Shown here: positions 28,336 through 52,372 of the stretch, in pieces | How positions within the stretch are numbered: position 1 is the stretch's first letter | Layout of the letters: every line of letters starts with the position of its first letter | DNA from: Haliotis rufescens | Taxonomy: Eukaryota | Length of the DNA: 64,000 bases | Assembly: GCF_023055435.1 (NCBI RefSeq) | Contig: NW_025964383.1 | Coordinates: 17,298,001-17,362,000, forward strand | Direction of reading: 5' to 3' | Notes under the pieces: model-generated | What the model was told of the DNA's origin: nothing | Database searches by the model: none | Seen by the model: the letters and a program-made list of their open reading frames with translations, nothing else | Position numbers and translations under genes: made by a program

Positions 28336-30264
28336 TTTCTAGGGCCTTCGGACACAACACTAGAATGCAGTCGGATGAAATACTACAGGAATTCAGTAGC
28401 GCCAAATTTGGATAATTGGAAAGTAGATGTGTTCGTTCTCACGGATTGAGATGAAGTGAAGGACTCCAGTCCGCGCAAAACATTTATACTGACCCTTAGT
28501 ATAAACATAGTAGTGGAGATTTATAGATCAAAGAGAGCATTTTCGAAGCCAGTGGCGAGATCAAAGCTACACTGCAACTTCATTAGGCTTTGATCCGAAA
28601 GGAATCTCACTGTCCACTTGAGAAACCAATCAACTTCTTGTCAAAACAAGTTTCCGTATAAAGGGAGAGGTCTGAGAAGAGTTCAACCAATCTAGTCCTG
28701 TTATCTCCAGGGATTATCAATCATTGTTAATTGATTAAATCGGGATTGATCAAACGGCGCAGTACGTTGTGATACTTAAAAATCCGATGTGGTTACTTCC
28801 GCATCCACAGAAACCAAGTCACAGAAACTTCTATCAGCTTGGAAATCGTGTGATGCTTCTCTGAACGTTTAGTTTAATTAAAAAACCCGAGAAAACCATG
28901 TCCACAATCCTAAGAAATCCTTACTCTGGTAGGCAAAGGCAAAGTGAATAAATGTACAGTCAAATCTTGAACTTATTGTACACATCTGTTTGAGGTCGTA
29001 AATGCTATGATAATCTGACCATTTTCCCAACCCGTCTTACATGATCGAAATACAGCACGTATGTTTTGAAGCATTTCAAATACTATTTTTTATGAATACC
29101 ATCATCATGGTATAATTGAAGCAGCTCATTTGGCTTAAGTATCTGGATATTAACCATCTTAGAAGCTTTTGGATGGACGTCGGCTACTTAAAAGGTTACT
29201 ATATAAATAAATAAATAGGCATGTACAATAAAGTTTATGTGTGTTAAATGATCTAGAGACATCATCTTCAGTGTATAACTGTCATGTTTTTGGGAGAATT
29301 ACAAAGCACGGTGTCATGATTTATATCTTTGAATACAGAATGCTGTTAAAGCACATGATGGAAATTGGAGTATGTTGCTAGATAAACATAAGCACGTTGT
29401 TAGCATTGTTTTTGAAAGATGCCCACTGTTTCATGTCAGGATATTCTGATCTTTACTTTTTAGTGCCTTTCAGGGGAATAGTATTCATCAAGTGCTGACT
29501 TGGATCAGAAATGTTATTTGGCCTGTGTTGATGTCAATGTTTCAATTTCCTTTTGTTTTCCATGCTGTCTACATTGACAATTTTTAACATGCATGACTCT
29601 CTCCTTAAGCACTTGGGCATGTACATTTCAAAAGGAAAGAGAAACAATTAAATGCTCTGATAATATGAAATACAACATGACATATATATCTCGCAGATCA
29701 ATATCATATGGGGTTGTGGTTCGTCTGTCTAAATCCTTTTGCTATAGGATCGGCATGGATACGGAAAACGAATTGCAACGTTCCAAACTGTATTTAATGT
29801 TATGGTGCAACCATTACATTGGAATCTCTTCTTCTCCATCATACCTAATGTCCAAATGTGTTTCATTTCAATTGATCTTATATTCAATAGTCTGTATCTT
29901 TTTCCTATTTCAAAGAATAGATTAAGGACGATATCTGCGAATGATTGCCATACTCAGAACCAAGTAAAATGATCGAAGGCTTGGTATTGTGAGATACCAT
30001 CTCAAATTAACCTTTTCTCTCTCTCACAAACTTTCTATACGAATGATGTCTTCAAGATGTCGTGAGCGTGTCAGCAAATGATCAAGATTATAATATCGAC
30101 TTCATTATTTATTTCCTCAGCATATTCATCAACAAACAAATGTGGTTTACAATATAATAGGATGCCCTTTGCACACTGTCAGGCAACATTTGTGTACAAT
30201 AACAAAAAATGAATAACAAGGTAAATGCAGCACTAGTTGATGTGGATGGGACTTGTGATTTCCC

Positions 30265-30886
30265 TTAGGCGTTTCTATGAAGTGCACTGTCGTCTACAGA
30301 CAAAGCTCGACTGAGAGTCGTCATATCGTAGCTGCTGTCGTTGCTGTATAGGTCTCCCTGGTCTTCGTCGTCCTCACTATATGAGCTGTCGGACAAGAGT
30401 TCCATGAAGGAAGCTTCATCGTCATTGAAAGAGGTATCTGCATTCCAGTCCGCCTCCGAATCACTCTCTGCAGAAGCATCTTTGGTGATGGCGTTTACAC
30501 AGGCTTGCACCTCTTGCCACTTGAGTTGTCTGTAGATGGTAAACATCTCCTTGACACCTTCCAGCACCCATCGTCTCTGGATCAGCTGTTCACCTCGGAT
30601 TATGCAGTTGTTGGAGGAGTTGGCTGTCATCTTCCGCATCAGATGGTAGACTTGGGTATCTGAAAACAATAAAACGGGTAATTAGAAATCTCGCTAAATG
30701 TGTTCACAACAATGTCATTTTATTTTGTTCAATTCTAAAATTCAGTGTGATACCAATATTGCCATGTTTGCAGGGGACTGAAAAAGAGCACAGTTCATAT
30801 TTACCTAATGTCAGGATCTCTTTCACTGCATTGTCGTGGGCAATAAGGAGACGTCTCAGCTTGATGGCAACTTGAACTGGATCCAT
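30265..30886 (-). CDS. Array gene copy 12 (158 aa, T to M variant)
   Basis: Same structure as copy 1. Confidence 0.78.
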
Positions 30887-32807
30887 TTTCTAGGGCCTTC
30901 GGACACAACACTAGAATGCAGTCGGATGAAATACTACAGGAATTCAGTAGCGCCAAATTTGGATAATTGGAAAGTAGATGTGTTCGTTCTCACGGATTGA
31001 GATGAAGTGAAGGACTCCAGTCCGCGCAAAACATTTATACTGACCCTTAGTATAAACATAGTAGTGGAGATTTATAGATCAAAGAGAGCATTTTCGAAGC
31101 CAGTGGCGAGATCAAAGCTACACTGCAACTTCATTAGGCTTTGATCCGAAAGGAATCTCACTGTCCACTTGAGAAACCAATCAACTTCTTGTCAAAACAA
31201 GTTTCCGTATAAAGGGAGAGGTCTGAGAAGAGTTCAACCAATCTAGTCCTGTTATCTCCAGGGATTATCAATCATTGTTAATTGATTAAATCGGGATTGA
31301 TCAAACGGCGCAGCACGTTGTGATACTTAAAAATCCGATGTGGTTACTTTCGCATCCACAGAAACCAAGTCACAGAAACTTCTATCAGCTTGGAAATCGT
31401 GTGATGCTTCTCTGAACGTTTAGTTTCAATTAAAAAACCCGAGAAAACCATGTCCACAATCCTAAGAAATCCTTACTCTGGTAGGCAAAGGCAAAGTGAA
31501 TAAATGTACAGTCAAATCTTGAACTTATTGTACACATCTGTTTGAGGTCGTAAATGCTATGATAATCTGACCATTTTCCCAACCCGTCTTACATGATCGA
31601 AATACAGCACGTATGTTTTGAAGCATTTCAAATACTATTTTTTATGAATACCATCATCATGGTATAATTGAAGCAGCTCAAGTATCTGGATATTAACCAT
31701 CTTAGAAGCTTTTGGATGGACGTCGGCTACTTAAAAGGTTACTATATAAATAAATAAATAGGCATGTACAATAAAGTTTATGTGTGTTAAATGATCTAGA
31801 GACATCATCTTCAGTGTATAACTGTCATGTTTTTGGGAGAATTACAAAGCACGGTGTCATGATTTATATCTTTGAATACAGAATGCTGTTAAAGCACATG
31901 ATGGAAATTGGAGTATGTTGCTAGATAAACATAAGCACGTTGTTAGCATTGTTTTTGAAAGATGCCCACTGTTTCATGTCAGGATATTCTGATCTTTACT
32001 TTTTAGTGCCTTTCAGGGGAATAGTATTCATCAAGTGCTGACTTGGATCAGAAATGTTATTTGGCCTGTGTTGATGTCAATGTTTCAATTTCCTTTTGTT
32101 TTCCATGCTGTCTACATTGACAATTTTTAACATGCATGACTCTCTCCTTAAGCACTTGGGCATGTACATTTCAAAAGGAAAGAGAAACAATTAAATGCTC
32201 TGATAATATGAAATACAACATGACATATATATCTCGCAGATCAATATCATATGGGGTTGTGGTTCGTCTGTCTAAATCCTTTTGCTATAGGATCGGAATG
32301 GATACGGAAAACGAATTGCAACGTTCCAAACTGTATTTAATGTTATGGTGCAACCATTACATTGGAATCTCTTCTTCTCCATCATACCTAATGTCCAAAT
32401 GTGTTTCATTTCAATTGATCTTATATTCAATAGTCTGTATCTTTTTCCTATTTCAAAGAATAGATTAAGGACGATATCTGCGAATGATTGCCATACTCAG
32501 AACCAAGTAAAATGATCGAAGGCTTGGTATTGTGAGATACCATCTCAAATTAACCTTTTCTCTCTCTCACAAACTTTCTATACGAATGATGTCTTCAAGA
32601 TGTCGTGAGCGTGTCAGCAAATGATCAATATTATAATATCGACTTCATTATTTATTTCCTCAGCATATTCATCAACAAACAAATGTGGTTTACAATATAA
32701 TAGGATGCCCTTTGCACACTGTCAGGCAACATTTGTGTACAATAACAAAAAATGAATAACAAGGTAAATGCAGCACTAGTTGATGTGGATGGGACTTGTG
32801 ATTTCCC

Positions 32808-36103: not shown

Positions 36104-36114
36104 GAAGGACTCCA
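36104..36114 (+). repeat. Target-site duplication of LINE copy A, left copy GAAGGACTCCA (right copy GAAGGACTTCA at 39558-39568)
   Basis: 11-bp direct repeat with one mismatch at both junctions; empty units carry a single copy. Confidence 0.85.
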
Positions 36115-39100
36115 CTTACTTACTTACTTTGGAGATTTAACGTGCGCTTTCCGACTGATGCGTATTTCGCACACGGGCCCGGCCAGGCCATTTAATGTGT
36201 TTCCGAAAGGGGCGAAGGTGGTCTGTGCAACCCAAGAGGGAGGTTTTAGGGGTTGCTTATATAGAATTTGGGAATTTTGAGATTTGGAATAGATGCCGAT
36301 GGGATTGGGGAGGAGAACTAAGGGAGCTGGGTATGGTGGATGTTTGTTTGTTTATGTGATTTTGATTTGGTGAGTTATTGTGTTTTTAGATGCGTTTTAT
36401 TAGTTCCGTTTTGATTAAGAATACGCCTAAGGCCTTGAAGTTTTCTAGTTTATTTTGTGGGTTTAGTATTGCTTCTAGAGTTAGAGCCTTGTTTAGATTG
36501 AGGGTGGTTTGTAATGCGGTTCGATGTGTTAGGTAGTGTGTGCAGTGGATGAGTGCGTGTTCTGGGGTTTCTGGTTGTTTGCAGTGTGGGCAGTTACCTG
36601 TAGTGTGTTTTTTAATTTTTTTTAGGTGGTTATTTAGGTTGGTGTGTCCTGTTTGGAGTTTAGTGATTACTCTGTCGATTTTTTTGGATGGATGGAGAAT
36701 TTTTGGTTTGGTTAGTGGTTTGCTGAGCACTTTTTTGATTTGGCTATTTGAGTTTAGATATAGGTTATGCCATTTTTTGGTGATTTTTTGCTTGTTTACA
36801 CTTTTAATTTCTGATTTTGAGATGGGTAAGTTTAAGCTTATTTCTGGGATTTTGAGGGATAGTTTAGCTGCTTTATCGGCGTTTTCATTACCGTATATTC
36901 CTACGTGGGCGGGTATCCACAAGAAGGTTATTTGTTTGCCTGCCTTAGTTAGGTCGTTGGAGCTTTTAAGTATTTGATTTATTAATTTAGGTCGGTTTTT
37001 GGTATTTTTGTTTTGGAGGGCTTGCAGTCCACTTAGGGAGTCGGTAAGTATTAGGATTTTTTTGTGGTTTTTGGATTCTTGATTATGGAGGGCTGAGGCC
37101 ATGCCCATTAGTTCTGCCGTGAATATTGATTGGTTGTTTGGGAGTCGGAAGGATTGTGTGGTTTTAGTTGGTTGCGTGGTATGGACTCCGAAACCTGTGT
37201 GTTTGGAGGTCGGATCTGAGGATCCGTCCGTGTAAATGTGACACCAATTTGGCCAATTTTCGTGTATGTATGCTAGTGTGGTAGTTTTAGCTATGTTTGG
37301 GTCGGTTTGTTTATTTATTTGGCTAGCTAGTGTTGTGTCTATTTTGGGTATTTTAAGTTTAGGGGTGAAGATATTTGATTGTTTGCAGTTTTGTTTAAGA
37401 TTTTTAATTTGGTGTTCATTTAGGTAGTTTGTTATTCTTTGGGATATTGGGGTAAGTAAGGGGTGTTTACGAGCTAGAGCTTGGTTTTTGGGGCTGATGT
37501 TTTGGGTTATTAAGTTTTGGATGAGAGGGTTTGATTGGGACGCGGCCCAGAAATTTAAGCTTAGCTGTTCCCTGCGTAGACTTAGTGGCATTTCTCCTGT
37601 TAAGGCCTGAAGTGAGGTGTAGGAGGTGCCATGTTGGGTGCGTGTAATTAGTTTGAGAGCCTGATATTGTATTGAGTCAAGTTTTTTAGATAGAGAGTTG
37701 TTTAGGGTGTTGTATATGGCGCAGCCGTAGTCTAGTTTTGATCTAATTAGTGATATGTAGAGAGAGAGGAGGGTATCTTTGGATGCTCCCCAGTTAGAAC
37801 CAGTTAGGCATCTTAGGGTGTTTAGGTCTTTACTGCATTTAGTTGTTAGGTTTTGGATGTGAGCATCCCAGGTGAGATGTTCATCGAAAATAAGTCCTAA
37901 GAATTTGGTTTGTTTTTGAAATTTGATTGTTTGATTGTTTAGCTGGAGGATTGGGGAGGCGGGTTTCATGTTTTTATGTTTGAATACTATTCCTGTTGTT
38001 TTTTCTGAGTTAAGGGAGAAGCCCCATTTGTCAGCCCACTGTTGTATTTTATTAAGAGATTTTTGGAGTAAATTTTGGACCATGTTCATGCTTTTAGTGC
38101 GGATCCAGATGGCTCCATCATCCGCGAATTTTGATGTGTTTACTTTAGGGGATAGGCCCTCGAATAGATCGTTTATCATTATATTGAAGAGGGTGGGGCT
38201 GAGGATACTGCCCTGTGGAGTACCATTTTCTAGGGGACATTGGTCCGATAGAGTTTGGTCTATACCCACGGTTATTTTACGATTGTTTAGGAAGTCCTTG
38301 ATGTAGTTTATTATCTGACCTTTGAGTCCTATTTTTTTAAGTTTTTGTATTAGCCCATCGTGCCATACCATGTCGAAAGCTTTAGAGAAGTCTAAGAAGA
38401 TGCCTGTGGTATATTGTTTATTTAGCTGTCCTGTCTTAATATCTTGTTCTAGTCGGGTGAGGTTATCTAGGGTTGAGCGGCCAGGAGTGAAACCGCTTTG
38501 ATCTGGGTTTATGATGTTATTTTGGGTTAAGTAATGTTGTAATCTATTTTTAGCCATTGATTCCATTACTTTACATAAGTTTGAAGTTAGGGATATTGGT
38601 CTATATGAGTTAGCTTGATTAGCTGGTTTATTAGGTTTAGGGATTGGTATGACTAGGGCCTGTTTCCAGGGAGTAGGAACCTGTCCGTTTAGGTAGATGA
38701 GATTGTATAGTTTGAGTAGTGCCTGGAGTAGTTTTAGGGGGAGTTTTTTAATTATTTGGTAAGAAGTTAGGTCTAATCCTGGGGCTGTGCCCTTTTTCCT
38801 GTTTTGGATTACGTAGAGGAGCTCCTCCATTGTGTAGGGTTGATTTATTTCTAGATTGTTATTGTTTGGTTCTTTTGTGGGTTTGTTTTCTGTTTTAAGT
38901 TTATCTTGGATTTTTTTACTGAAGTTGGTGTTACTGCTAACGGCCGAAAAGTGGTTGGCGAGATTATTTGCTTTTTGGGCGGGGTTGGTTGAGTTGTCAA
39001 TGTTAGGGGTTTTTTTATGTCGTTTTAAGCCTCTGATGGCGTGGATTTTGCGCCAGACCGTTCTGGCATCTGTACGGTTATTTATACCTTCGCAGAATTT

Positions 39101-39557
39101 TTTCCAGTCTCTACTTTTGGCTATTTGGACTAGTTTTTGAACCTGGTGGTTTAGTTCGTGGGCTATGTTTAAATATTTGTAATCGCGTTTTGCTTTATTG
39201 AAGGCTGATTTACGTTTTCGTCTAGTCTGTTCTATTTCCTCATTCCACCATGGTACCGTCGGTTTGCCTGTCTTAGATGTTTTGAAGGGGATGGAGGTTT
39301 TGGCTGCGTTTATTATATAGTCTGTTAGGTTTTTACAATAGGTTTCTGGATCATTATTTTCTATTTCGTTTAGGTTAGCTTCGTTGCAGATATCTTGGAA
39401 TTGGTCCCAGTTAGCTTTATTGTAATGGAATTTTGGTTCTTGGTTTTCTGTTTGGATTGGTACGTTTGTATTTCCTATGGTTATGTTTATGGGGAAGTGG
39501 TCACTACCTAGCGGGACGTCGTGCACTTCCCATTGAGTACTTTGGGCTAGATCTGCG
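36115..39557 (-). mobile_element. Non-LTR retrotransposon copy A, I group (I/Nimb/Loa-like), 5'-truncated, about 3.44 kb
   Basis: Array sequence stops at ...GGACTCCA and resumes at GAAGGACTTCAGTCCGCG. Contains ORF2 with RT and RNase H, a ~270-bp 3'UTR and a (TAAG)3 tail. Confidence 0.95.
36386..39526 (-). CDS. ORF2 of LINE copy A, N-terminally truncated: end of APE domain, complete RT, RNase H, C-terminal CCHC
   Basis: Motifs GSDHFPI, PWWN, APGLD, YRPISLTS, QSGF, LDFSKAFD, GTPQGSILSP, FADD, KFLG, YTDGS, FTAEL, TDSLS, WIPAHVGIYGNENAD, CPHC-x7-H-x4-C. The listed start is an internal GTG. Confidence 0.93.
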   Translation of the reverse strand: MHDVPLGSDHFPINITIGNTNVPIQTENQEPKFHYNKANWDQFQDICNEANLNEIENNDPETYCKNLTDYIINAAKTSIPFKTSKTGKPTVPWWNEEIEQTRRKRKSAFNKAKRDYKYLNIAHELNHQVQKLVQIAKSRDWKKFCEGINNRTDARTVWRKIHAIRGLKRHKKTPNIDNSTNPAQKANNLANHFSAVSSNTNFSKKIQDKLKTENKPTKEPNNNNLEINQPYTMEELLYVIQNRKKGTAPGLDLTSYQIIKKLPLKLLQALLKLYNLIYLNGQVPTPWKQALVIPIPKPNKPANQANSYRPISLTSNLCKVMESMAKNRLQHYLTQNNIINPDQSGFTPGRSTLDNLTRLEQDIKTGQLNKQYTTGIFLDFSKAFDMVWHDGLIQKLKKIGLKGQIINYIKDFLNNRKITVGIDQTLSDQCPLENGTPQGSILSPTLFNIMINDLFEGLSPKVNTSKFADDGAIWIRTKSMNMVQNLLQKSLNKIQQWADKWGFSLNSEKTTGIVFKHKNMKPASPILQLNNQTIKFQKQTKFLGLIFDEHLTWDAHIQNLTTKCSKDLNTLRCLTGSNWGASKDTLLSLYISLIRSKLDYGCAIYNTLNNSLSKKLDSIQYQALKLITRTQHGTSYTSLQALTGEMPLSLRREQLSLNFWAASQSNPLIQNLITQNISPKNQALARKHPLLTPISQRITNYLNEHQIKNLKQNCKQSNIFTPKLKIPKIDTTLASQINKQTDPNIAKTTTLAYIHENWPNWCHIYTDGSSDPTSKHTGFGVHTTQPTKTTQSFRLPNNQSIFTAELMGMASALHNQESKNHKKILILTDSLSGLQALQNKNTKNRPKLINQILKSSNDLTKAGKQITFLWIPAHVGIYGNENADKAAKLSLKIPEISLNLPISKSEIKSVNKQKITKKWHNLYLNSNSQIKKVLSKPLTKPKILHPSKKIDRVITKLQTGHTNLNNHLKKIKKHTTGNCPHCKQPETPEHALIHCTHYLTHRTALQTTLNLNKALTLEAILNPQNKLENFKALGVFLIKTELIKRI

Positions 39558-41365
39558 GAAGGACTTCAGTCCGCGCAAAACATTTATACTGACCCTTAGT
39601 ATAAACATAGTAGTGGAGATTTATAGATCAAAGAGAGCATTTTCGAAGCCAGTAGCGAGATCAAAGCTACACTGCAACTTCATTAGGCTTTGATCCGAAA
39701 GGAATCTCACTGTCCACTTGAGAAACCAATCAACTTCTTGTCAAAACAAGTTTCCGTATAAAGGGAGAGGTCTGAGAAGAGTTCAACCAATCTAGTCCTG
39801 TTATCTCCAGGGATTATCAATCATTGTTAATTGATTAAATCGGGATTGATCAAACGGCGCAGTACGTTGTGATACTTAAAAATCCGATGTGGTTACTTTC
39901 GCATCCACAGAAACCAAGTCACAGAAACTTCTATCAGCTTGGAAATCGTGTGATGCTTCTCTGAACGTTTAGTTTCAATTAAAAAACCCGAGAAAACCAT
40001 GTCCACAATCCTAAGAAATCCTTACTCTGGTAGGCAAAGGCAAAGTGAATAAATGTACAGTCAAATCTTGAACTTATTGTACACATCTGTTTGAGGTCGT
40101 AAATGCTATGATAATCTGACCATTTTCCCAACCCGTCTTACATGATCGAAATACAGCACGTATGTTTTGAAGCATTTCAAATACTATTTTTTATGAATAC
40201 CATCATCATGGTATAATTGAAGCAGCTCATTTGGCTGAAGCATCTATATATTAACCATCTTAGAAGCTTTTGGATGGACGTCGGCTACTTAAAAGGTTAC
40301 TATATAAATAAATAAATAGGCATGTACAATAAAGTTTATGTGTGTTAAATGATCTAGAGACATCATCTTCAGTGTATAACTGTCATGTTTTTGGGAGAAT
40401 TACAAAGCACGGTGTCATGATTTATATCTTTGAATACAGAATGCTGTTAAAGCACATAATGGAAATTGGAGTATGTTGCTAGATAAACATAAGCACGTTG
40501 TTAGCATTGTTTTTGAAAGATGCCCACTGTTTCATGTCAGGATATTCTGATCTTTACTTTTTAGTGCCTTTCAGGGGAATAGTATTCATCAAGTGCTGAC
40601 TTGGATCAGAAATGTTATTTGGCCTGTGTTGATGTCAATGTTTCAATTTCCTTTTGTTTTCCATGCTGTCTACATTGACAATTTTTAACATGCATGACTC
40701 TCTCCTTAAGCACTTGGGCATGTACATTTCAAAAGGAAAGAGAAACAATTAAATGCTCTGATAATATGAAATACAACCTGACATATATATCTCGCAGATC
40801 AATATCATATGGGGTTGTGGTTCGTCTGTCTAAATCCTTTTGCTATAGGATCGGCATGGATACGGAAAACGAATTGCAACGTTCCAAACTGTATTTAATG
40901 TTATGGTGCAACCATTACATTGGAATCTCTTCTTCTCCATCATACCTAATGTCCAAATGTGTTTCATTTCAATTGATCTTATATTCAATAGTCTGTATCT
41001 TTTTCCTATTTCAAAGAATAGATTAAGGACGATATCTGCGAATGATTGCCATACTCAGAACCAAGGAAAATGATCGAAGGCTTGGTATTGTGAGATACCA
41101 TCTCAAATTAACCTTTTCTCTCTCTCACAAACTTTCTATACGAATGATGTCTTCAAGATGTCGTGAGCGTGTCAGCAAATGATCAAGATTATAATATCGA
41201 CTTCATTATTTATTTCCTCAGCATATTCATCAACAAACAAATGTGGTTTACAATATAATAGGATGCCCTTTGCACACTGTCAGGCAACATTTGTGTACAA
41301 TAACAAAAAATGAATAACAAGGTAAATGCAGCACTAGTTGATGTGGATGGGACTTGTGATTTCCC

Positions 41366-41987
41366 TTAGGCGTTTCTATGAAGTGCACTGTCGTCTACAG
41401 ACAAAGCTCGACTGAGAGTCGTCATATCGTAGCTGCTGTCGTTGCTGTATAGGTCTCCCTGGTCTTCGTCGTCCTCACTATATGAGCTGTCGGACAAGAG
41501 TTCCGTGAAGGAAGCTTCATCATCATTGAAAGAGGTATCTGCATTCCAGTCCGCCTCCGAATCACTCTCTGCAGAAGCATCTTTGGTGATGGCGTTTACA
41601 CAGGCTTGCACCTCTTGCCACTTGAGTTGTCTGTAGATGGTAAACATCTCCTTGACACCTTCCAGCACCCATCGTCTCTGGATCAGCTGTTCACCTCGGA
41701 TTATGCAGTTGTTGGAGGAGTTGGCTGTCATCTTCCGCATCAGATGGTAGACTTGGGTATCTGAAAACAATAAAACGGGTAATTAGAAATCTCGCTAAAT
41801 GTGTTCACAACAATGTCATTTTATTTTGTTCAATTCTAAAATTCAGTGTGATACCAATATTGCCATGTTTGCAGGGGACTGAAAAAGAGCACAGTTCATA
41901 TTTACCTAATGTCAGGATCTCTTTCACTGCATTGTCGTGGGCAATAAGGAGACGTCTCAGCTTGATGGCAACTTGAACTGGATCCAT
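41366..41987 (-). CDS. Array gene copy 15 (coding intact; core promoter split by LINE copy B)
   Basis: Same exons as copy 1; its TATA box is displaced to 48061-48055. Confidence 0.75.
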
Positions 41988-42395
41988 TTTCTAGGGCCTT
42001 CGGACACAACACTAGAATGCAGTCGGATGAAATACTACAGGAATTCAGTAGCGCCAAATTTGGATAATTGGAAAGTAGATGTGTTCGTTTTCACGGATTG
42101 AGATGAAGTGAAGGACTCCACTTACTTACTTACTTACTTTGGAGATTTAACGTGCGCTTTCCGACTGATGCGTATTTCGCACACGGGCCCGGCCAGGCCA
42201 TTTAATGTGTTTCCGAAAGGGGCGAAGGTGGTCTGTGCAACCCAAGAGGGGGGTTTTAGGGGTTGCTTATATAGAATTTGGGAATTTTGAGATTTGGAAT
42301 AGATGCCGATGGGATTGGGGAGGAGAACTAAGGGAGCTGGGTATGGTGGATGTTTGTTTGTTTATGTGATTTTGATTTGGTGAGTTATTGTGTTT

Positions 42396-45300
42396 TTAGA
42401 TGCGTTTTATTAGTTCCGTTTTGATTAAGAATACGCCTAAGGCCTTGAAGTTTTCTAGTTTATTTTGTGGGTTTAGTATTGCTTCTAGAGTTAGAGCCTT
42501 GTTTAGATTGAGGGTGGTTTGTAATGCGGTTCGATGTGTTAGGTAGTGTGTGCAGTGGATGAGTGCGTGTTCTGGGGTTTCTGGTTGTTTGCAGTGTGGG
42601 CAGTTACCTGTAGTGTGTTTTTTAATTTTTTTTAGGTGGTTATTTAGGTTGGTGTGTCCTGTTTGGAGTTTAGTGATTACTCTGTCGATTTTTTTGGATG
42701 GATGGAGAATTTTTGGTTTGGTTAGTGGTTTGCTGAGCACTTTTTTGATTTGGCTATTTGAGTTTAGATATAGGTTATGCCATTTTTTGGTGATTTTTTG
42801 CTTGTTTACACTTTTAATTTCTGATTTTGAGATGGGTAAGTTTAAGCTTATTTCTGGGATTTTGAGGGATAGTTTAGCTGCTTTATCGGCGTTTTCATTA
42901 CCGTATATTCCTACGTGGGCGGGTATCCACAAGAAGGTTATTTGTTTGCCTGCCTTAGTTAGGTCGTTGGAGCTTTTAAGTATTTGATTTATTAATTTAG
43001 GTCGGTTTTTGGTATTTTTGTTTTGGAGGGCTTGCAGTCCACTTAGGGAGTCGGTAAGTATTAGGATTTTTTTGTGGTTTTTGGATTCTTGATTATGGAG
43101 GGCTGAGGCCATGCCCATTAGTTCTGCCGTGAATATTGATTGGTTGTTTGGGAGTCGGAAGGATTGTGTGGTTTTAGTTGGTTGTGTGGTATGGACTCCG
43201 AAACCTGTGTGTTTGGAGGTCGGATCTGAGGATCCGTCCGTGTAAATGTGACACCAATTTGGCCAATTTTCGTGTATGTATGCTAGTGTGGTAGTTTTAG
43301 CTATGTTTGGGTCGGTTTGTTTATTTATTTGGCTAGCTAGTGTTGTGTCTATTTTGGGTATTTTAAGTTTAGGGGTGAAGATATTTGATTGTTTGCAGTT
43401 TTGTTTAAGATTTTTAATTTGGTGTTCATTTAGGTAGTTTGTTATTCTTTGGGATATTGGGGTAAGTAAGGGGTGTTTACGAGCTAGAGCTTGGTTTTTG
43501 GGGCTGATGTTTTGGTTTATTAAGTTTTGGATGAGAGGGTTTGATTGGGACGCGGCCCAGAAATTTAAGCTTAGCTGTTCCCTGCGTAGACTTAGTGGCA
43601 TTTCTCCTGTTAAGGCCTGAAGTGAGGTGTAGGAGGTGCCATGTTGGGTGCGTGTAATTAGTTTGAGAGCCTGATATTGTATTGAGTCAAGTTTTTTAGA
43701 TAGAGAGTTGTTTAGGGTGTTGTATATGGCGCAGCCGTAGTCTAGTTTTGATCTAATTAGTGATATGTAGAGAGAGAGGAGGGTATCTTTGGATGCTCCC
43801 CAGTTAGAACCAGTTAGGCATCTTAGGGTGTTTAGGTCTTTACTGCATTTAGTTGTTAGGTTTTGGATGTGAGCATCCCAGGTGAGATGTTCATCGAAAA
43901 TAAGTCCTAAGAATTTGGTTTGTTTTTGAAATTTGATTGTTTGATTGTTTAGCTGGAGGATTGGGGAGGCGGGTTTCATGTTTTTATGTTTGAATACTAT
44001 TCCTGTTGTTTTTTCTGAGTTAAGGGAGAAGCCCCATTTGTCAGCCCACTGTTGTATTTTATTAAGAGATTTTTGGAGTAAATTTTGGACCATGTTCATG
44101 CTTTTAGTGCGGATCCAGATGGCTCCATCATCCGCGAATTTTGATGTGTTTACTTTAGGGGATAGGCCCTCGAATAGATCGTTTATCATTATATTGAAGA
44201 GGGTGGGGCTGAGGATACTGCCCTGTGGAGTACCATTTTCTAGGGGACATTGGTCCGATAGAGTTTGGTCTATACCCACGGTTATTTTACGATTGTTTAG
44301 GAAGTCGAGATTATTTGCTTTTTGGGCGGGGTTGGTTGAGTTGTCAATGTTAGGGTTTTTTTTATGTCGTTTTAAGCCTCTGATGGCGTGGATTTTGCGC
44401 CAGACCGTTCTGGCATCTGTACGGTTATTTATACCTTCGCAGAATTTTTTCCAGTCTCTACTTTTGGCTATTTGGACTAGTTTTTGAACCTGGTGGTTTA
44501 GTTCGTGGGCTATGTTTAAATATTTGTAGTCGCGTTTTGCTTTATTGAAGGCTGATTTACGTTTTCGTCTAGTCTGTTCTATTTCCTCATTCCACCATGG
44601 TACCGTCGGTTTGCCTGTCTTAGATGTTTTGAAGGGGATGGAGGTTTTGGCTGCGTTTATTATATAGTCTGTTAGGTTTTTACAATAGGTTTCTGGATCA
44701 TTATTTTCTATTTCGTTTAGGTTAGCTTCGTTGCAGATATCTTGGAATTGGTCCCAGTTAGCTTTATTGTAATGGAATTTTGGTTCTTGGTTTTCTGTTT
44801 GGATTGGTACGTTTGTATTCCCTATGGTTATGTTTATGGGGAAGTGGTCACTACCTAGCGGGACGTCGTGCACTTCCCATTGAGTACTTTGGGCTAGATC
44901 TGCGGTGCATATGGTTAGGTCGATAGCCGACATTTTTTGGTTTATCTTATCGTACCTCGTGGGTTGGTTGCTATTAAGGAGTACTAGGTCGTTTGTTTCT
45001 ATCCATTCGGAGATTAATTTGCCATGATTATCTATTTTATCATCTATGCTCCATGTAGGATGGTGAGCGTTAAAGTCTCCTAGGAATATAGTAGATTTAT
45101 CGCTTATTTGGAGTAGTTTGTTTAGATCCTCAGGTTGGACTTTTTGTTCCGCCCAGTGGTAAATATTTATGATATTTATGTTTCGGTTATTTAATGTGAT
45201 TTTAATGCCGTTGGCTTCTAGGTTTGGCGTGTCTATTTTTATTTCTTCGTAATTTATATCTTCCCTGATAAATATGATTAGTCCTCCTGCGGCTCTTCTT

Positions 45301-45515
45301 GTTTTCGGTTTAGCTCTGTCAGTTCTAACTGAGTTGTAGTTAGGTAGTGTGAATTTGGATTTTTTTGAGAATTTGGTTTCCTGTATACAAGCAATGTGAG
45401 GGCCTTTATTTAGTTTAAATTTAGTTTTTAGTTCATGGCCGTGGGAGGTGAGTCCGTTGGCGTTCCACTGAAAAATATTTAGTCCTTCGAATATTGGGTT
45501 CGGGTGATTGGTGAT
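42396..45515 (-). CDS. ORF2 of LINE copy B: APE endonuclease, deleted RT, RNase H, CCHC; open frame of 1039 codons with no initiating ATG
   Basis: Manual translation extends the 845-aa ORF by 194 stop-free codons to a TAA at 45518-45516. These contain the APE motifs FQWNANGL, IACIQET, AGGL, NIY, LGDFNAHH and PTR, followed by IDL and SDH. Confidence 0.88.
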   Translation of the reverse strand: MTNHPNPIFEGLNIFQWNANGLTSHGHELKTKFKLNKGPHIACIQETKFSKKSKFTLPNYNSVRTDRAKPKTRRAAGGLIIFIREDINYEEIKIDTPNLEANGIKITLNNRNINIINIYHWAEQKVQPEDLNKLLQISDKSTIFLGDFNAHHPTWSIDDKIDNHGKLISEWIETNDLVLLNSNQPTRYDKINQKMSAIDLTICTADLAQSTQWEVHDVPLGSDHFPINITIGNTNVPIQTENQEPKFHYNKANWDQFQDICNEANLNEIENNDPETYCKNLTDYIINAAKTSIPFKTSKTGKPTVPWWNEEIEQTRRKRKSAFNKAKRDYKYLNIAHELNHQVQKLVQIAKSRDWKKFCEGINNRTDARTVWRKIHAIRGLKRHKKNPNIDNSTNPAQKANNLDFLNNRKITVGIDQTLSDQCPLENGTPQGSILSPTLFNIMINDLFEGLSPKVNTSKFADDGAIWIRTKSMNMVQNLLQKSLNKIQQWADKWGFSLNSEKTTGIVFKHKNMKPASPILQLNNQTIKFQKQTKFLGLIFDEHLTWDAHIQNLTTKCSKDLNTLRCLTGSNWGASKDTLLSLYISLIRSKLDYGCAIYNTLNNSLSKKLDSIQYQALKLITRTQHGTSYTSLQALTGEMPLSLRREQLSLNFWAASQSNPLIQNLINQNISPKNQALARKHPLLTPISQRITNYLNEHQIKNLKQNCKQSNIFTPKLKIPKIDTTLASQINKQTDPNIAKTTTLAYIHENWPNWCHIYTDGSSDPTSKHTGFGVHTTQPTKTTQSFRLPNNQSIFTAELMGMASALHNQESKNHKKILILTDSLSGLQALQNKNTKNRPKLINQILKSSNDLTKAGKQITFLWIPAHVGIYGNENADKAAKLSLKIPEISLNLPISKSEIKSVNKQKITKKWHNLYLNSNSQIKKVLSKPLTKPKILHPSKKIDRVITKLQTGHTNLNNHLKKIKKHTTGNCPHCKQPETPEHALIHCTHYLTHRTALQTTLNLNKALTLEAILNPQNKLENFKALGVFLIKTELIKRI

Positions 45516-45534
45516 TTATTTTTTATTTTTTATT

Positions 45535-47175
45535 TTATTCGGTGAGTTCTTTTAGATGGAGGTTAAAGAGGAAGAAGGGAAGATCGGTTAATTTTAGATT
45601 GAAAGCTACTTTGTAGAAGGATTTCATGCTAGCTTTTGGTGAGTTTTGACTATGCATGTATGCTAGGAGTAAGGTGAGGTTGTTTAGGTTTTGGGTGTTG
45701 GCTGGTTGGGGAGTTTGGTTTGTTTTAGTTGGAGTAGTGTCTATTGTTTCCTCAGTAGTGGAGAAATCTTCGTCATCGGTTAGATTAGGTTTAGCTGATT
45801 GAGTTTCCATGGGGGAGGCATGTGATGTGGAGGATTGTGAAGGTGTTTGTGGGATGGGTGTAGCTGATGATTTCATAGTGTTTGTGTTTTGTTGTTGTGC
45901 TTGCTTGTGGGAGAGCGTTGTTACCATATTGGCTGTAGGGTGCTTGGATGAGGGTCGTGTTGTGGTGGTCATTTTGAGGTTTGTTTTGCATGCGGGGGTT
46001 GATGTTTTGGCTATGTGAGATGTGGGAGGGTTCGTGGTTGGTTGAGTGGCTGCTTGTATGTGTGAGGTGGGTGCGGTTTCTCGGTAGGGGCCCCAGACAG
46101 AGCTGTCGGTTATGGGTGTGGTGTTTGTTTGTGGGATGGTGTTTGGGTGTGGTGTAGGGAGGAGTGGTTTAGATGCAGGTGTAGCAAATTTTCGTGTTTG
46201 GATTTTAGCCGTGTCTATGTTTATGTGTTTGTTGGCCTGCTGGGTGAGTGTGTGTCTGTATGGGCATTGGTTTGAGAGTGAAGTGTGTTGGGTGGATTTG
46301 CAGTGGATGCACCAGGGTGTGCATGTGCCTGTGCAGTCTGTTTGTGCGCATTTTTTACATTTAGTTTTACGGTATGTGCATTGGGAGGCAGTGTGGTTGT
46401 ATTTGAGGCACTTTGTACATTGCTTAACCTGCTTTATATAGGGTTTGACTTCTAAGTTGGTGTGGGCTCCGAAGGATATGTGTTTGGGGGCTTCAGGGAA
46501 TTTAGCGGTCTTTTTGAAGTTGATTATGACAATGGAGGTTGGGACCGTTTTTCCGTTTCTAGTTGAGGTTATTCTACGCGTGCTGGTGATTAGGGGTTGA
46601 GGGTTTTGGTCTTGGTTTATGTTAGCTTCTAGAGAGTATAATTGTAAGTCCTCAGTTGTTTCCCTTGGGTTAACCCTAATTACGCCTCGTGTATATTGTT
46701 GCCAATTAGGTGTTTGTTTGATTACTGTGACGTGGAATATTTGAGTTATTTTATTTGCTGCGTTGTAAGATTCTCGGTTAGGGAAGATTATCTGGTATCC
46801 TTTGTTGGCTTTTTTAATATTGTTGTAATTTATTTTTTCTCTTTTAAACCAAAGTCCTATTTTATCTGCCGAAAGTTCTAGTGAGAGAGTGGTGCCTGAG
46901 CCTGCTGAGAAGAAGTAGAGGGCGAAGGTCGTGAGGAAGGCGGCCGGGGTGGGTGTGGGCGATGGAGGTGGAGTGGATGTGTCGAGTTTGCGTTTTTTGG
47001 TGTTTTGAGGTGGCGAGTTAGCTGGTTTGGTGGGGGTGGTGTGTGTCGTGTTTTCGCCATACTCGGTCGGGACGATGTTTTCGAGTGACCTCCCGGAAGT
47101 GTTGTGCGCTTCCGCAGGCGTGGGTGAGTTAGGAGCTGGCATGTCTGCGAGTGTGGCGTTGCGGGTGTCAGTCAT
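45535..47175 (-). CDS. ORF1 (gag-like nucleic-acid chaperone) of LINE copy B, 546 aa
   Basis: Zinc-knuckle cluster CTKCLKYNHTASQC / CKKCAQTDCTGTC / CIHCKSTQHTSLSNQC, directly upstream of ORF2, with Pro/Thr-rich flanks and a KKRK motif. Confidence 0.9.
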   Translation of the reverse strand: MTDTRNATLADMPAPNSPTPAEAHNTSGRSLENIVPTEYGENTTHTTPTKPANSPPQNTKKRKLDTSTPPPSPTPTPAAFLTTFALYFFSAGSGTTLSLELSADKIGLWFKREKINYNNIKKANKGYQIIFPNRESYNAANKITQIFHVTVIKQTPNWQQYTRGVIRVNPRETTEDLQLYSLEANINQDQNPQPLITSTRRITSTRNGKTVPTSIVIINFKKTAKFPEAPKHISFGAHTNLEVKPYIKQVKQCTKCLKYNHTASQCTYRKTKCKKCAQTDCTGTCTPWCIHCKSTQHTSLSNQCPYRHTLTQQANKHINIDTAKIQTRKFATPASKPLLPTPHPNTIPQTNTTPITDSSVWGPYRETAPTSHIQAATQPTTNPPTSHIAKTSTPACKTNLKMTTTTRPSSKHPTANMVTTLSHKQAQQQNTNTMKSSATPIPQTPSQSSTSHASPMETQSAKPNLTDDEDFSTTEETIDTTPTKTNQTPQPANTQNLNNLTLLLAYMHSQNSPKASMKSFYKVAFNLKLTDLPFFLFNLHLKELTE

Positions 47176-47449
47176 GTTGTTTGGAGAGTTGGAGAGCGTC
47201 TGTTGTGGTGAGTGGTGGTGGAGTGGGAGTGGTGTTTTGGGGAGGTGAGTTGGTTTGTTGTTTTTACTTGGTGAGTTGTGTTTAGGAGGCGGAGGAGGTT
47301 GCGGTGGTTATTTGTTGTTGGTTTTAGTAGGAGGGTTTGTGAAATGGATTAATTATTAAAGATTTATTTTGTTGCTGGAAGGCTGGGATAAGGTGAGACA
47401 AGTGGAAAGCGGGGATTAGGAGATATTTAGTCGAAGGAGTGGAGGTATG

Positions 47450-47660
47450 TGAGTGGTGGGCGTGGGTGGTGAGTAGGAAAGAGCGTGCGTTGTGTTAAGG
47501 AGAAGGGGGGATTAGGTGTTTTTTTGTTTTTAGGAGTTGGGTCAAAGGGTGTGTTTGAGTGGTGGGCGTGGGTAGCGAGTAGAAATGAGTGCGAGCTGTG
47601 TTAGGGAGATGGGGGAGGATAAGGTGTTGGTTATTTATAAGAGTTGAGTGTTGTTGTTGG
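47450..47660. repeat. Diverged ~106-bp tandem duplication in the LINE 5'UTR
   Basis: TGAGTGGTGGGCGTGGGT...GAGTAG...TGTGTTA...AGGTGTT occurs at 47450 and 47556. Confidence 0.75.
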
Positions 47661-47691
47661 TTTTAAGGATTTAGGGGTTTAGTGATTAATT

Positions 47692-48022
47692 CGGTGAGAG
47701 TGATGTATGTGAATAAGGATGAAAGGATAACGTGATAATTACCGATGATGGAGTTTCCTTGGCTGGCTATCAGGCAATGCTCTGTGCTGGCTTGGGAAGT
47801 GTTGCTCGCTTGGCCAAGACTCGATTATTTACAGACCGCTGTCCTATAGCTGGAATATTGCTAGGTTCGGCGTTAAACAACAAACAAACAAACGATGAGA
47901 GTGATTTTAAGAGTATGTGAATAAGGCTGAAAGGATAACGTGATAATTACCGATGATGGATTTCTCCTTGGCTGGCTATCAGGCAATGCTCTGTGCTGGC
48001 TTGGGAGGTGTTGCTCGCTTGG
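47692..48022. repeat. ~120-bp direct repeats (47692-47813 and 47893-48022) flanking an 80-bp insert in the LINE 5'UTR
   Basis: TGAGAGTGAT...GAAAGGATAACGTGATAATTACCGATGATGGA...TTGCTCGCTTGG is present twice, with a few substitutions and an 8-bp indel. Confidence 0.9.
47814..47892 (+). mobile_element. 3' fragment of a SINE-like retroposon, antisense to the LINE
   Basis: AGACTCGATTATTTACAGACCG...TATAGCTGGAATATTGCT...CGGCGTTAAA followed by a (CAAA)n tail. From memory it resembles gastropod (abalone-type) SINE 3' ends; not database-verified. Confidence 0.65.
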
Positions 48023-49829
48023 AGTACAAACTGCAACTGCAGTCCGTGCAAAACATTTATACTGACCCTTAGTATAAACATAGTAGTGGAGATTTATAGA
48101 TCAAAGAGAGCATTTTCGAAGCCAGTGGCGAGATCAAAGCTACACTGCAACTTCATTAGGCTTTGATCCGAAAGGAATCTCACTGTCCACTTGAGAAACC
48201 AATCAACTTCTTGTCAAAACAAGTTTCCGTATAAAGGGAGAGGTCTGAGAAGAGTTCAACCAATCTAGTCCTGTTATCTCCAGGGATTATCAATCATTGT
48301 TAATTGATTAAATCGGGATTGATCAAACGGCGCAGTACGTTGTGATACTTAAAAATCCGATGTGGTTACTTTCGCATCCACAGAAACCAAGTCACAGAAA
48401 CTTCTATCAGCTTGGAAATCGTGTGATGCTTCTCTGAACGTTTAGTTTCAATTAAAAAACCCGAGAAAACCATGTCCACAATCCTAAGAAATCCTTACTC
48501 TGGTAGGCAAAGGCAAAGTGAATAAATGTACAGTCAAATCTTGAACTTATTGTACACATCTGTTTGAGGTCGTAAATGCTATGATAATCTGACCATTTTC
48601 CCAACCCGTCTTACATGATCGAAATACAGCACGTATGTTTTGAAGCATTTCAAATACTATTTTTTATGAATACCATCATCATGGTATAATTGAAGCAGCT
48701 CATGTATCTGGATATTAACCATCTTAGAAGCTTTTGGATGGACGTCGGCTACTTAAAAGGTTACTATATAAATAAATAAATAGGCATGTACAATAAAGTT
48801 TATGTGTGTTAAATGATCTAGAGACATCATCTTCAGTGTATAACTGTCATGTTTTTGGGAGAATTACAAAGCACGGTGTCATGATTTATATCTTTGAATA
48901 CAGAATGCTGTTAAAGCACATGATGGAAATTGGAGTATGTTGCTAGATAAACATAAGCACGTTGTTAGCATTGTTTTTGAAAGATGCCCACTGTTTCATG
49001 TCAGGATATTCTGATCTTTACTTTTTAGTGCCTTTCAGGGGAATAGTATTCATCAAGTGCTGACTTGGATCAGAAATGTTATTTGGCCTGTGTTGATGTC
49101 AATGTTTCAATTTCCTTTTGTTTTCCATGCTGTCTACATTGACAATTTTTAACATGCATGACTCTCTCCTTAAGCACTTGGGCATGTACATTTCAAAAGG
49201 AAAGAGAAACAATTAAATGCTCTGATAATATGAAATACAACCTGACATATATATCTCGCAGATCAATATCATATGGGGTTGTGGTTCGTCTGTCTAAATC
49301 CTTTTGCTGTAGGATCGGCATGGATACGGAAAACGAATTGCAACGTTCCAAACTGTATTTAATGTTATGGTGCAACCATTACATTGGAATCTCTTCTTCT
49401 CCATCATACCTAATGTCCAAATGTGTTTCATTTCAATTGATCTTATATTCAATAGTCTGTATCTTTTTCCTATTTCAAAGAATAGATTAAGGACGATATC
49501 TGCGAATGATTGCCATACTCAGAACCAAGGAAAATGATCGAAGGCTTGGTATTGTGAGATACCATCTCAAATTAACCTTTTCTCTCTCTCACAAACTTTC
49601 TATACGAATGATGTCTTCAAGATGTCGTGAGCGTGTCAGCAAATGATCAAGATTATAATATCGACTTCATTATTTATTTCCTCAGCATATTCATCAACAA
49701 ACAAATGTGGTTTACAATATAATAGGATGCCCTTTGCACACTGTCAGGCAACATTTGTGTACAATAACAAAAAATGAATAACAAGGTAAATGCAGCACTA
49801 GTTGATGTGGATGGGACTTGTGATTTCCC

Positions 49830-50451
49830 TTAGGCGTTTCTATGAAGTGCACTGTCGTCTACAGACAAAGCTCGACTGAGAGTCGTCATATCGTAGCTGC
49901 TGTCGTTGCTGTATAGGTCTCCCTGGTCTTCGTCGTCCTCACTATATGAGCTGTCGGACAAGAGTTCCGCGAAGGAAGCTTCATCATCATTGAAAGAGGT
50001 ATCTGCATTCCAGTCCGCCTCCGAATCACTCTCTGCAGAAGCATCTTTGGTGATGGCGTTTACACAGGCTTGCACCTCTTGCCACTTGAGTTGTCTGTAG
50101 ATGGTAAACATCTCCTTGACACCTTCCAGCACCCATCGTCTCTGGATCAGCTGTTCACCTCGGATTATGCAGTTGTTGGAGGAGTTGGCTGTCATCTTCC
50201 GCATCAGATGGTAGACTTGGGTATCTGAAAACAATAAAACGGGTAATTAGAAATCTCGCTAAATGTGTTCACAACAATGTCATTTTATTTTGTTCAATTC
50301 TAAAATTCAGTGTGATACCAATATTGCCATGTTTGCAGGGGACTGAAAAAGAGCACAGTTCATATTTACCTAATGTCAGGATCTCTTTCACTGCATTGTC
50401 GTGGGCAATAAGGAGACGTCTCAGCTTGATGGCAACTTGAACTGGATCCAT
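49830..50451 (-). CDS. Array gene copy 16 (158 aa, T to A variant)
   Basis: Same structure as copy 1. Confidence 0.78.
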
Positions 50452-52372
50452 TTTCTAGGGCCTTCGGACACAACACTAGAATGCAGTCGGATGAAATACT
50501 ACAGGAATTCAGTAGCGCCAAATTTGGATAATTGGAAAGTAGATGTGTTCGTTTTCACGGATTGAGATGAAGTGAAGGACTCCAGTCCGTGCAAAACATT
50601 TATACTGACCCTTAGTATAAACATAGTAGTGGAGATTTATAGATCAAAGAGAGCATTTTCGAAGCCAGTGGCGAGATCAAAGCTACACTGCAACTTCATT
50701 AGGCTTTGATCCGAAAGGAATCTCACTGTCCACTTGAGAAACCAATCAACTTCTTGTCAAAACAAGTTTCCGTATAAAGGGAGAGGTCTGAGAAGAGTTC
50801 AACCAATCTAGTCCTGTTATCTCCAGGGATTATCAATCATTGTTAATTGATTAAATCGGGATTGATCAAACGGCGCAGTACGTTGTGATACTTAAAAATC
50901 CGATGTGGTTACTTTCGCATCCACAGAAACCAAGTCACAGAAACTTCTATCAGCTTGGAAATCGTGTGATGCTTCTCTGAACGTTTAGTTTCAATTAAAA
51001 AACCCGAGAAAACCATGTCCACAATCCTAAGAAATCCTTACTCTGGTAGGCAAAGGCAAAGTGAATAAATGTACAGTCAAATCTTGAACTTATTGTACAC
51101 ATCTGTTTGAGGTCGTAAATGCTATGATAATCTGACCATTTTCCCAACCCGTCTTACATGATCGAAATACAGCACGTATGTTTTGAAGCATTTCAAATAC
51201 TATTTTTTATGAATACCATCATCATGGTATAATTGAAGCAGCTCATGTATCTGGATATTAACCATCTTAGAAGCTTTTGGATGGACGTCGGCTACTTAAA
51301 AGGTTACTATATAAATAAATAAATAGGCATGTACAATAAAGTTTATGTGTGTTAAATGATCTAGAGACATCATCTTCAGTGTATAACTGTCATGTTTTTG
51401 GGAGAATTACAAAGCACGGTGTCATGATTTATATCTTTGAATACAGAATGCTGTTAAAGCACATGATGGAAATTGGAGTATGTTGCTAGATAAACATAAG
51501 CACGTTGTTAGCATTGTTTTTGAAAGATGCCCACTGTTTCATGTCAGGATATTCTGATCTTTACTTTTTAGTGCCTTTCAGGGGAATAGTATTCATCAAG
51601 TGCTGACTTGGATCAGAAATGTTATTTGGCCTGTGTTGATGTCAATGTTTCAATTTCCTTTTGTTTTCCATGCTGTCTACATTGACAATTTTTAACATGC
51701 ATGACTCTCTCCTTAAGCACTTGGGCATGTACATTTCAAAAGGAAAGAGAAACAATTAAATGCTCTGATAATATGAAATACAACCTGACATATATATCTC
51801 GCAGATCAATATCATATGGGGTTGTGGTTCGTCTGTCTAAATCCTTTTGCTATAGGATCGGAATGGATACGGAAAACGAATTGCAACGTTCCAAACTGTA
51901 TTTAATGTTATGGTGCAACCATTACATTGGAATCTCTTCTTCTCCATCATACCTAATGTCCAAATGTGTTTCATTTCAATTGATCTTATATTCAATAGTC
52001 TGTATCTTTTTCCTATTTCAAAGAATAGATTAAGGACGATATCTGCGAATGATTGCCATACTCAGAACCAAGGAAAATGATCGAAGGCTTGGTATTGTGA
52101 GATACCATCTCAAATTAACCTTTTCTCTCTCTCACAAACTTTCTATACGAATGATGTCTTCAAGATGTCGTGAGCGTGTCAGCAAATGATCAATATTATA
52201 ATATCGACTTCATTATTTATTTCCTCAGCATATTCATCAACAAACAAATGTGGTTTACAATATAATAGGATGCCCTTTGCACACTGTCAGGCAACATTTG
52301 TGTACAATAACAAAAAATGAATAACAAGGTAAATGCAGCACTAGTTGATGTGGATGGGACTTGTGATTTCCC

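Follow-up and report, generated by a model that had tools for sequence, protein, structure and literature searches.

A dispersed abalone LINE inserted twice at the same nucleotide in the promoter of a tandem-array gene, with probable TATA-linked target choice

Retrotransposons that read the transcription machinery to choose their sites are known at Pol III genes, as in Ty3, Ty1, and TRE5-A. The Drosophila LINEs I factor, jockey, and Doc have internal promoters with a fixed CAGT-type initiator, and we know of no TATA-linked target choice for any of the three. R1, R2, and Tx1 insert at one nucleotide of a tandem gene unit, within an array that buffers the damage, and are confined to that one target sequence. 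Among the Pol III systems, Ty3 integrates at start sites via the TBP and Brf subunits of TFIIIB (PMC5911963), and the ORF1 protein of TRE5-A binds TBP, Brf1, and Bdp1, with a neighboring tRNA gene boosting the promoter module of the element (PMC5911963).

Here we describe a LINE of the abalone Haliotis rufescens for which Ty3 and TRE5-A are the nearest working analogues. The likeness to Ty3 would lie in position-specific insertion at a start site, a fixed distance downstream of a TBP-containing complex, but Ty3 belongs to the LTR elements, relies on an integrase, and targets Pol III genes, whereas the abalone LINE uses target-primed reverse transcription at a Pol II-type protein-coding TATA box and at many non-genic TATA-like boxes. 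TRE5-A is likewise a LINE with an apurinic-type endonuclease, and its site choice is set by a transcription complex; however, TRE5-A lands about 44-54 bp upstream of tRNA genes and in reverse orientation to them, whereas the abalone LINE lies downstream of the TATA box, co-oriented with it and inside the core promoter. Like I factor, jockey, and Doc, the abalone LINE has full-length copies that start at one fixed CAGT-type nucleotide beside any flank, but it has no recognizable downstream promoter element and its promoter is putative. With R1, R2, and Tx1 it shares insertion at one nucleotide of a tandem gene unit, but the abalone LINE is dispersed. A literature search, which was not exhaustive, turned up no LINE reported to insert on the downstream side of TATA boxes at a short, fixed distance.

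Two insertions at one position of a tandem gene array

The window, by which we mean the whole 64,000-nt stretch of abalone DNA analyzed here, carries a tandem array with its gene on the minus strand. Its genomic coordinates are C605:17298001-17362000. Pattern searches of the window and the genome gave a period of 2,551 bp and ~40 units at a single locus. A 20-nt motif running from the TATA box to GGAC occurred 22 times in the window, on the minus strand every time, and a 26-nt version occurred 35 times genome-wide, all at C605:17.266-17.369 Mb on the window's own contig; the array extends over ~104 kb. Tandem Repeats Finder did not pick up the array, the period of which is beyond the limit of the program.

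The array gene is an orphan of two exons encoding 158 aa on the minus strand. With exon 2 alone as the query, a database search returned a 100% match to the 158-aa "uncharacterized protein LOC124119705" of Haliotis rufescens, and the complete 158-aa sequence was taken from that entry. Exon 2 also matched a Haliotis asinina protein at 86% and, at 40%, a single 155-aa protein encoded on a Logan contig. Pfam assigned the protein to no family, with KCT2 as the sole, subthreshold match, Rfam returned nothing for the array unit and the LINE, and a literature search found three LOC identifiers unmentioned in any paper.

Every unit contained a TATAAAT box followed by an initiator-like TCACTTC, the A of which lay 31 nt past the first T of the box. 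This arrangement fits a host core promoter with TATAAA ~30 nt before a YYANWYY initiator and would give a 122-nt leader with zero ATGs. The core from GGAC to the leader was identical across all 20 empty units in the window, and the empty site, TATAAATGTTTTGCRCGGAC followed by TGGAGTCCTTCACTTC, has 20 occurrences in the window and 33 genome-wide, on one contig only. Insertions fell 11-12 nt upstream of the initiator-like A. The nick lies inside a small palindrome, GGACT-GG-AGTCC (31012-31023 in the example unit), that is present in every unit, and a second TATAAAT (31070-31076), located 37 nt upstream of the main box, has no insertion. The array-unit spacer differs among individuals or units (at 48703, 48805-49004, 49047-49103, and 49172-49405), the variants comprising a 9-bp insertion in runs X1, X3, and X17, a 200-bp replacement in X1 and X3, and an SNP cluster; one spacer stretch was poorly covered, the deep run included.

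Table 1. Features of empty and filled array units and of the two LINE copies in the window
Feature	Position	Strand	Detail
Reference empty core promoter	50573..50604	minus	TATA T 50604; initiator-like A 50573
Nick position in reference empty unit	between 50585 and 50584	minus	
Array-gene intron	50225..50369	minus	145 bp, GT..AG
Example unit, promoter and start codon	31039; 31008; 30886	minus	First T of TATAAAT; A of TCACTTC; ATG
Example unit (31039), intron and 3' end	30804-30660; near 30265; near 30110	minus	145-bp GT..AG intron; stop; AATAAA
Host TATAAAT, unit B	48055..48061	minus	First T 48061
"TG" between host flank and LINE, unit B	48040..48041	minus	2-bp target duplication (again at 42120-42119) or filler
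LINE copy B	42121..48039	minus	5,919 bp, 5'-complete, begins CAGTTGCAGTT
SINE-head fragment in LINE 5'UTR	47827..47925	minus	In all full-length copies compared
Copy B ORF1	45535..47175	minus	546 aa, Cys/His knuckle-like motifs
Copy B ORF2	42396..45515	minus	Open throughout; endonuclease, partial reverse transcriptase, RNase H
(TAAG)4 tail, copy B	42121..42136	minus	TTAAAT box 14 nt upstream
Displaced host TGGAGTCCTTCACTTC	42105..42120	minus	Initiator-like A 42109
Intact gene copy 3' of copy B	ATG 41987; stop 41366-41368	minus	
Host TATAAAT, unit A	39582..39588	minus	
5' copy of 11-bp target duplication, unit A	39558..39568	minus	TGAAGTCCTTC, one G>A change
LINE copy A	36115..39557	minus	3,443 bp, 5'-truncated
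3' copy of target duplication, unit A	36104..36114	minus	TGGAGTCCTTC

Two LINE blocks were first visible as strand skew at 36.1-39.6 kb and 42.1-48.0 kb, and the spacing of units indicated that these are the only large insertions in the ~104-kb array. The initial annotation had placed a LINE between the TATA box and the initiator of a gene copy, in the orientation of that gene, and this geometry was confirmed for the larger copy, B. The filled site on the minus strand (48061..48027) matches the sequence quoted there, and the claimed distances of 31, 23, 29, and ~11 nt are all correct on that strand. At the 5' junction of copy B, host sequence ending in GCACGGAC plus TG is followed by the first C of the LINE at 48039, and the two CAGT A's (48038 and 48032) lie 23 and 29 nt from the TATA T. 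Copy B places 5.9 kb between this gene copy and its TATA box, which bears out the proposal that the gene had been cut off from the box. Relative to copy A and four other copies, copy B ORF2 has an in-frame 663-bp deletion near 44306 (44262-44351) that removes 221 codons, the first half of the reverse-transcriptase domain, and a genome search found the deletion junction to be unique. Copy B is thus predicted to be unable to make reverse transcriptase. What remains of copy A starts at the end of the endonuclease domain. Both its reverse transcriptase domain and its RNase H domain are complete, and the tail is (TAAG)3.

Copies A and B occupy neighboring units, are both co-oriented with the array gene, and were primed at one nick in the template strand, between positions 20 and 21 from the TATA T. 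The chance of two random insertions sharing both position and orientation is ~1 in 5,000. We considered whether the LINE had inserted once, with the unit later duplicated by unequal crossing-over and rearranged, in which case the shared site would be no hot spot. The filled units are adjacent, the 3' junctions of A and B are identical, and tandem amplification of a unit plus LINE is common elsewhere in this genome, all as such a history would have it. However, copy A is flanked by a proper 11-bp target duplication, whereas copy B has only the TG; the tails differ, (TAAG)3 against (TAAG)4; and the flank alleles of the two filled units differ, GCGCGG against GCACGG. Deriving A from B would require a deletion and templated filler, and deriving B from A would require an exact 5' extension and loss of the duplication. 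We therefore regard a single insertion as highly improbable. A and B share 99.5-99.9% identity, and B shares 99.1-99.9% with other copies. Together, the differing 5' junctions, flank alleles, and tails and the private deletion of B indicate that, as judged from their sequences, copies A and B are independent insertions at the same nucleotide.

A dispersed LINE family with a fixed 5' end

Pfam searches identified an Exo_endo_phos_2 domain in ORF2 (1e-20) and, in copy A, RVT_1 (1e-47) and RNase_H (8e-19) domains; ORF1 matched no Pfam family. The element is a LINE with an apurinic-type endonuclease and an I-like architecture, the "I-group" label reflecting domain order alone. Hallmarks of target-primed insertion are present as (TAAG)n tails, 5' truncation (copy A), and target duplications (copy A, and 9-11 bp at loci L004 and L035).

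A genome search with either end of the LINE gave at least 1,569-1,610 first-look candidates. Perfect 27-nt 5' ends numbered 108, all beginning at CAGTTGCAG, and after removal of duplicated segments these adjoined ~49 unrelated ordinary flanks. Another ~9 copies begin 5-10 nt beyond an older LINE's tail, and one SINE-head flank, joined directly to the first LINE nucleotide, is common to 11 copies. These 11 junctions could represent either a longer 5' variant or recurrent insertion at a single SINE position. At the other end, more than 20 different 3' flanks shared no consensus beyond a 0- to 3-nt overlap with the tail.

The dispersed copies with unrelated flanks indicate that the LINE family is not specific to the array. 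They also bear on whether the LINE might be dedicated to the array in the manner of R1, R2, or Tx1, with sequence-specific recognition of GGAC/TGGAGTCC. Such recognition would account for two insertions at one nucleotide and for a nick within the small palindrome, but the ~49 unrelated 5' flanks and more than 20 3' flanks lack such a motif, and a pattern search found only 2 of 35 array promoters filled. We give this explanation almost no credence, as the dispersed copies with flanks that are not GGACTGGAG-like rule it out.

The use of the same first nucleotide beside unrelated flanks further implies that the LINE sets its own start independently of the host TATA box. The initial annotation had compared the LINE 5' end to the CAGT-type initiator of the I factor, and the family does begin at a CAGT-type first nucleotide in 108 of 108 perfect ends. 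A fixed start nucleotide is predicted by an internal promoter with a CAGT-type initiator, and we refer to this promoter as putative; inspection by eye of LINE positions +28 to +33 revealed no recognizable downstream promoter element.

The 5'UTR of the LINE includes a SINE-head fragment, which sits between two ~110-bp direct repeats at LINE positions 18-127 and 227-335 (47705-48022) that are 96% alike. In Haliotis, SINEs have been described in which a LINE 5'UTR module forms the head and AATATA precedes the terminal repeats; the partner LINE of these LP-SINEs was left unassigned (PMC4758252). Tails of a sister subfamily of our LINE read ...AATATAAGTAAG. With this tail and the AATATA as a lead, the LINE group described here may be the partner of the Haliotis LP-SINEs.

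The LINE or parts of it also occur in tandem arrays at C52:300-396 kb, C578/C579, C2:11.42-11.46 Mb, C24:20.38-20.39 Mb, and C8:402-404 kb, with periods of about 1.9/2.9, 6.82, 6.36, 6.53, and 0.87 kb. Some of these arrays are head to tail, with copies only ~10 nt apart. The 10-nt spacer between tandem LINEs at C578:2306085 ff and C579:3679 ff is CATGCACGGA. GCACGGA is common to this spacer and the array flank of copy B, where it is followed by a TG that the spacer lacks; this resemblance is probably a coincidence. At C201:1020798-1020894, two full-length LINEs lie head to head, 43 nt apart, and the spacer between them has TATA-like boxes in both directions.

TATA-like boxes upstream of LINE 5' ends

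We analyzed the sequences preceding LINE 5' ends for TATAWA boxes, with the background rate taken from 31 kb of the same flanks farther out (0.0015 per position, or 3.7% per 31-position window). A box lay 0-30 nt before the 5' end in 15 of the 49 independent flanks against the 3.7% expected (binomial p = 2e-10); this distance range was partly chosen post hoc, with the entire 31-position bin still significant, and several TATATA-type flanks seem to be one repeat family, so that independence is reduced and collapsing them by eye leaves about 11 of 45. Leaving out the locus in the 64,000-nt window gave 14 of 48 (p = 2e-9). Boxes 31-61 nt before the 5' end were found at six loci, five of which also had a proximal box, and a box stood exactly 34-35 nt before the junction at five unrelated loci (p of about 6e-7). 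Orientation was likewise biased, with TATAAA at seven loci versus the reverse, TTTATA, at one, which is the background level. Constraint on the distance and orientation of the TATA box, seen here in the excess (p = 2e-10), the 34- to 35-nt peak, and the count of 7 versus 1, is a property shared with Ty3 and TRE5-A. General AT-richness was rejected as the cause of the TATA excess, because the GC content of the proximal 50 nt (0.399) equals that of the background (0.393).

Where both junctions were readable, the nick lay 20 nt after the first T of the box for copies A and B and 21-23 nt after it for L004/L035. Six pattern searches of the genome for the target duplications of five TATA-flanked copies returned none at the right loci, so the nick-to-TATA distance derives from three events. 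Since ~70% of the independent full-length flanks have no strict TATAWA nearby, the TATA box would be a preference of the LINE and no requirement.

These findings support a model in which the LINE would insert a short way downstream of TATA-like boxes that point in its own direction. The perfect TATAAAT in each array unit would then have led to two neighboring units being targeted independently, with the same first-strand nick. The attractant would be the TATA box itself, read either directly or via bound TBP or a pre-initiation complex. A nick placed by this rule would cause the 5' end of a full-length copy to fall at about the former host start site. We consider it likely that TATA-linked target choice by a young, dispersed LINE explains the double insertion, as such targeting accounts for two insertions at one nucleotide.

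The same observations bear on whether the site is fragile independently of the LINE, through transcription-associated breaks or a cruciform at the palindrome, with the LINE using existing lesions. Two features are compatible with fragility: the palindrome at the nick and the location of the site, on the upstream border of the stretch that should melt at a TATA promoter. However, the (TAAG)n tails of A and B are intact and one of the two insertions has a normal duplication, as expected when insertion depends on the endonuclease, and the TATA association recurs at many unrelated loci, which makes a preexisting lesion very unlikely as the source of the two insertions.

Regarding what is read at the TATA box, the initial annotation had suggested that targeting might depend on an open promoter as well as on sequence. 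Its suggestion of a determinant beyond the local sequence gained support from the family-wide excess of 5' ends downstream of co-oriented TATA boxes, but for the open-promoter part, direct recognition of TATA DNA fits equally well. Many of the targeted boxes lie in repeats, outside known promoters, which favors recognition of DNA over that of open promoters. A more specific possibility is that the LINE reads a TATA box bound by TBP or a pre-initiation complex and nicks the template strand at the upstream melting edge, with the host TATA completing an internal promoter that has no TATA of its own. We regard this mechanism as doubtful; if true, reading of TBP-bound TATA would make the element a natural promoter-seeking LINE at Pol II promoters.

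TATA-linked target choice, as the preferred reading, may extend to insertions of the LINE next to itself. At the LINE 3' end, a TTAAAT precedes the tail by 14 nt, and new copies begin 34-42 nt after this TTAAAT. This spacing fits the TATA rule, which would thereby account for the head-to-tail LINE arrays found in this genome. One-nucleotide hot spots in multicopy TATA targets such as the gene array, SINE heads, and the tails of older LINEs would also be explained if the rule holds, and new copies would have a mechanism for gaining a TATA box. Furthermore, the genes mutated by the family would be predictable as those containing a TATA box, and the locus would show a tandem array absorbing insertions, here in 2 of ~40 units.

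Promoter borrowing and expression of the array gene

The initial annotation had drawn a further consequence from the geometry of copy B, namely that the LINE might insert into open promoters and that the host TATA box and upstream enhancers could drive its CAGT initiator in the expression pattern of the array gene. Several observations are consistent with such borrowing. The 29 nt from the TATA T to the second CAGT A are a canonical TATA-to-initiator spacing, in the same orientation; co-oriented TATA boxes are found 20-36 nt upstream of 5' ends across the family; and the LINE itself supplies no TATA ahead of its start. By analogy, an upstream tRNA gene enhances the TRE5-A promoter module (PMC5911963). 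However, the start nucleotide is identical in flanks that have no TATA box, and copy A, which lacks the LINE 5' end, is found at the same site. Because copy A used this site without any initiator, site choice appears to be a property of integration and not of start-site replacement. Furthermore, the reverse transcriptase of copy B is defective and the junction of its deletion occurs only once genome-wide, indicating that copy B has no progeny and giving no sign that borrowing paid off for this copy. On balance, we think it improbable that the LINE borrows host promoters in this way, and TATA-linked target choice at integration remains the explanation that we prefer for the site.

Contigs from sequencing runs provided some information on expression of the array gene. 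Among the runs listed for the locus, none is recorded as RNA. None of the contigs listed for four runs bridged a filled junction. In X1/X3 contigs, the intron-containing path had a depth of 12.8 and the exact intron-less joint, 50224>50370, had a depth of 16.8. An intron-less gene copy was found nowhere in the assembly, and the joint was absent from the deep run X17. The presence of the joint in X1/X3 but in neither the assembly nor X17 suggests that it represents spliced RNA and that the predicted splice is expressed; alternatively, other individuals may carry intron-less units. These runs could be either RNA or DNA, as one X1/X3 contig spans the spacer, TATA box, and exon 1 at a depth equal to that of the exons, and the depth ratios are DNA-like.

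As a minor observation, each insertion brought a TTAAAT of its own upstream of the initiator-like A that it displaced. The TTAAAT lies 41 nt upstream of this A in unit B (42137-42150) and 37 nt upstream in unit A (36127-36140). The native TATA-to-initiator distance is 31 nt, so the inserted TTAAAT is off the native spacing in both units.
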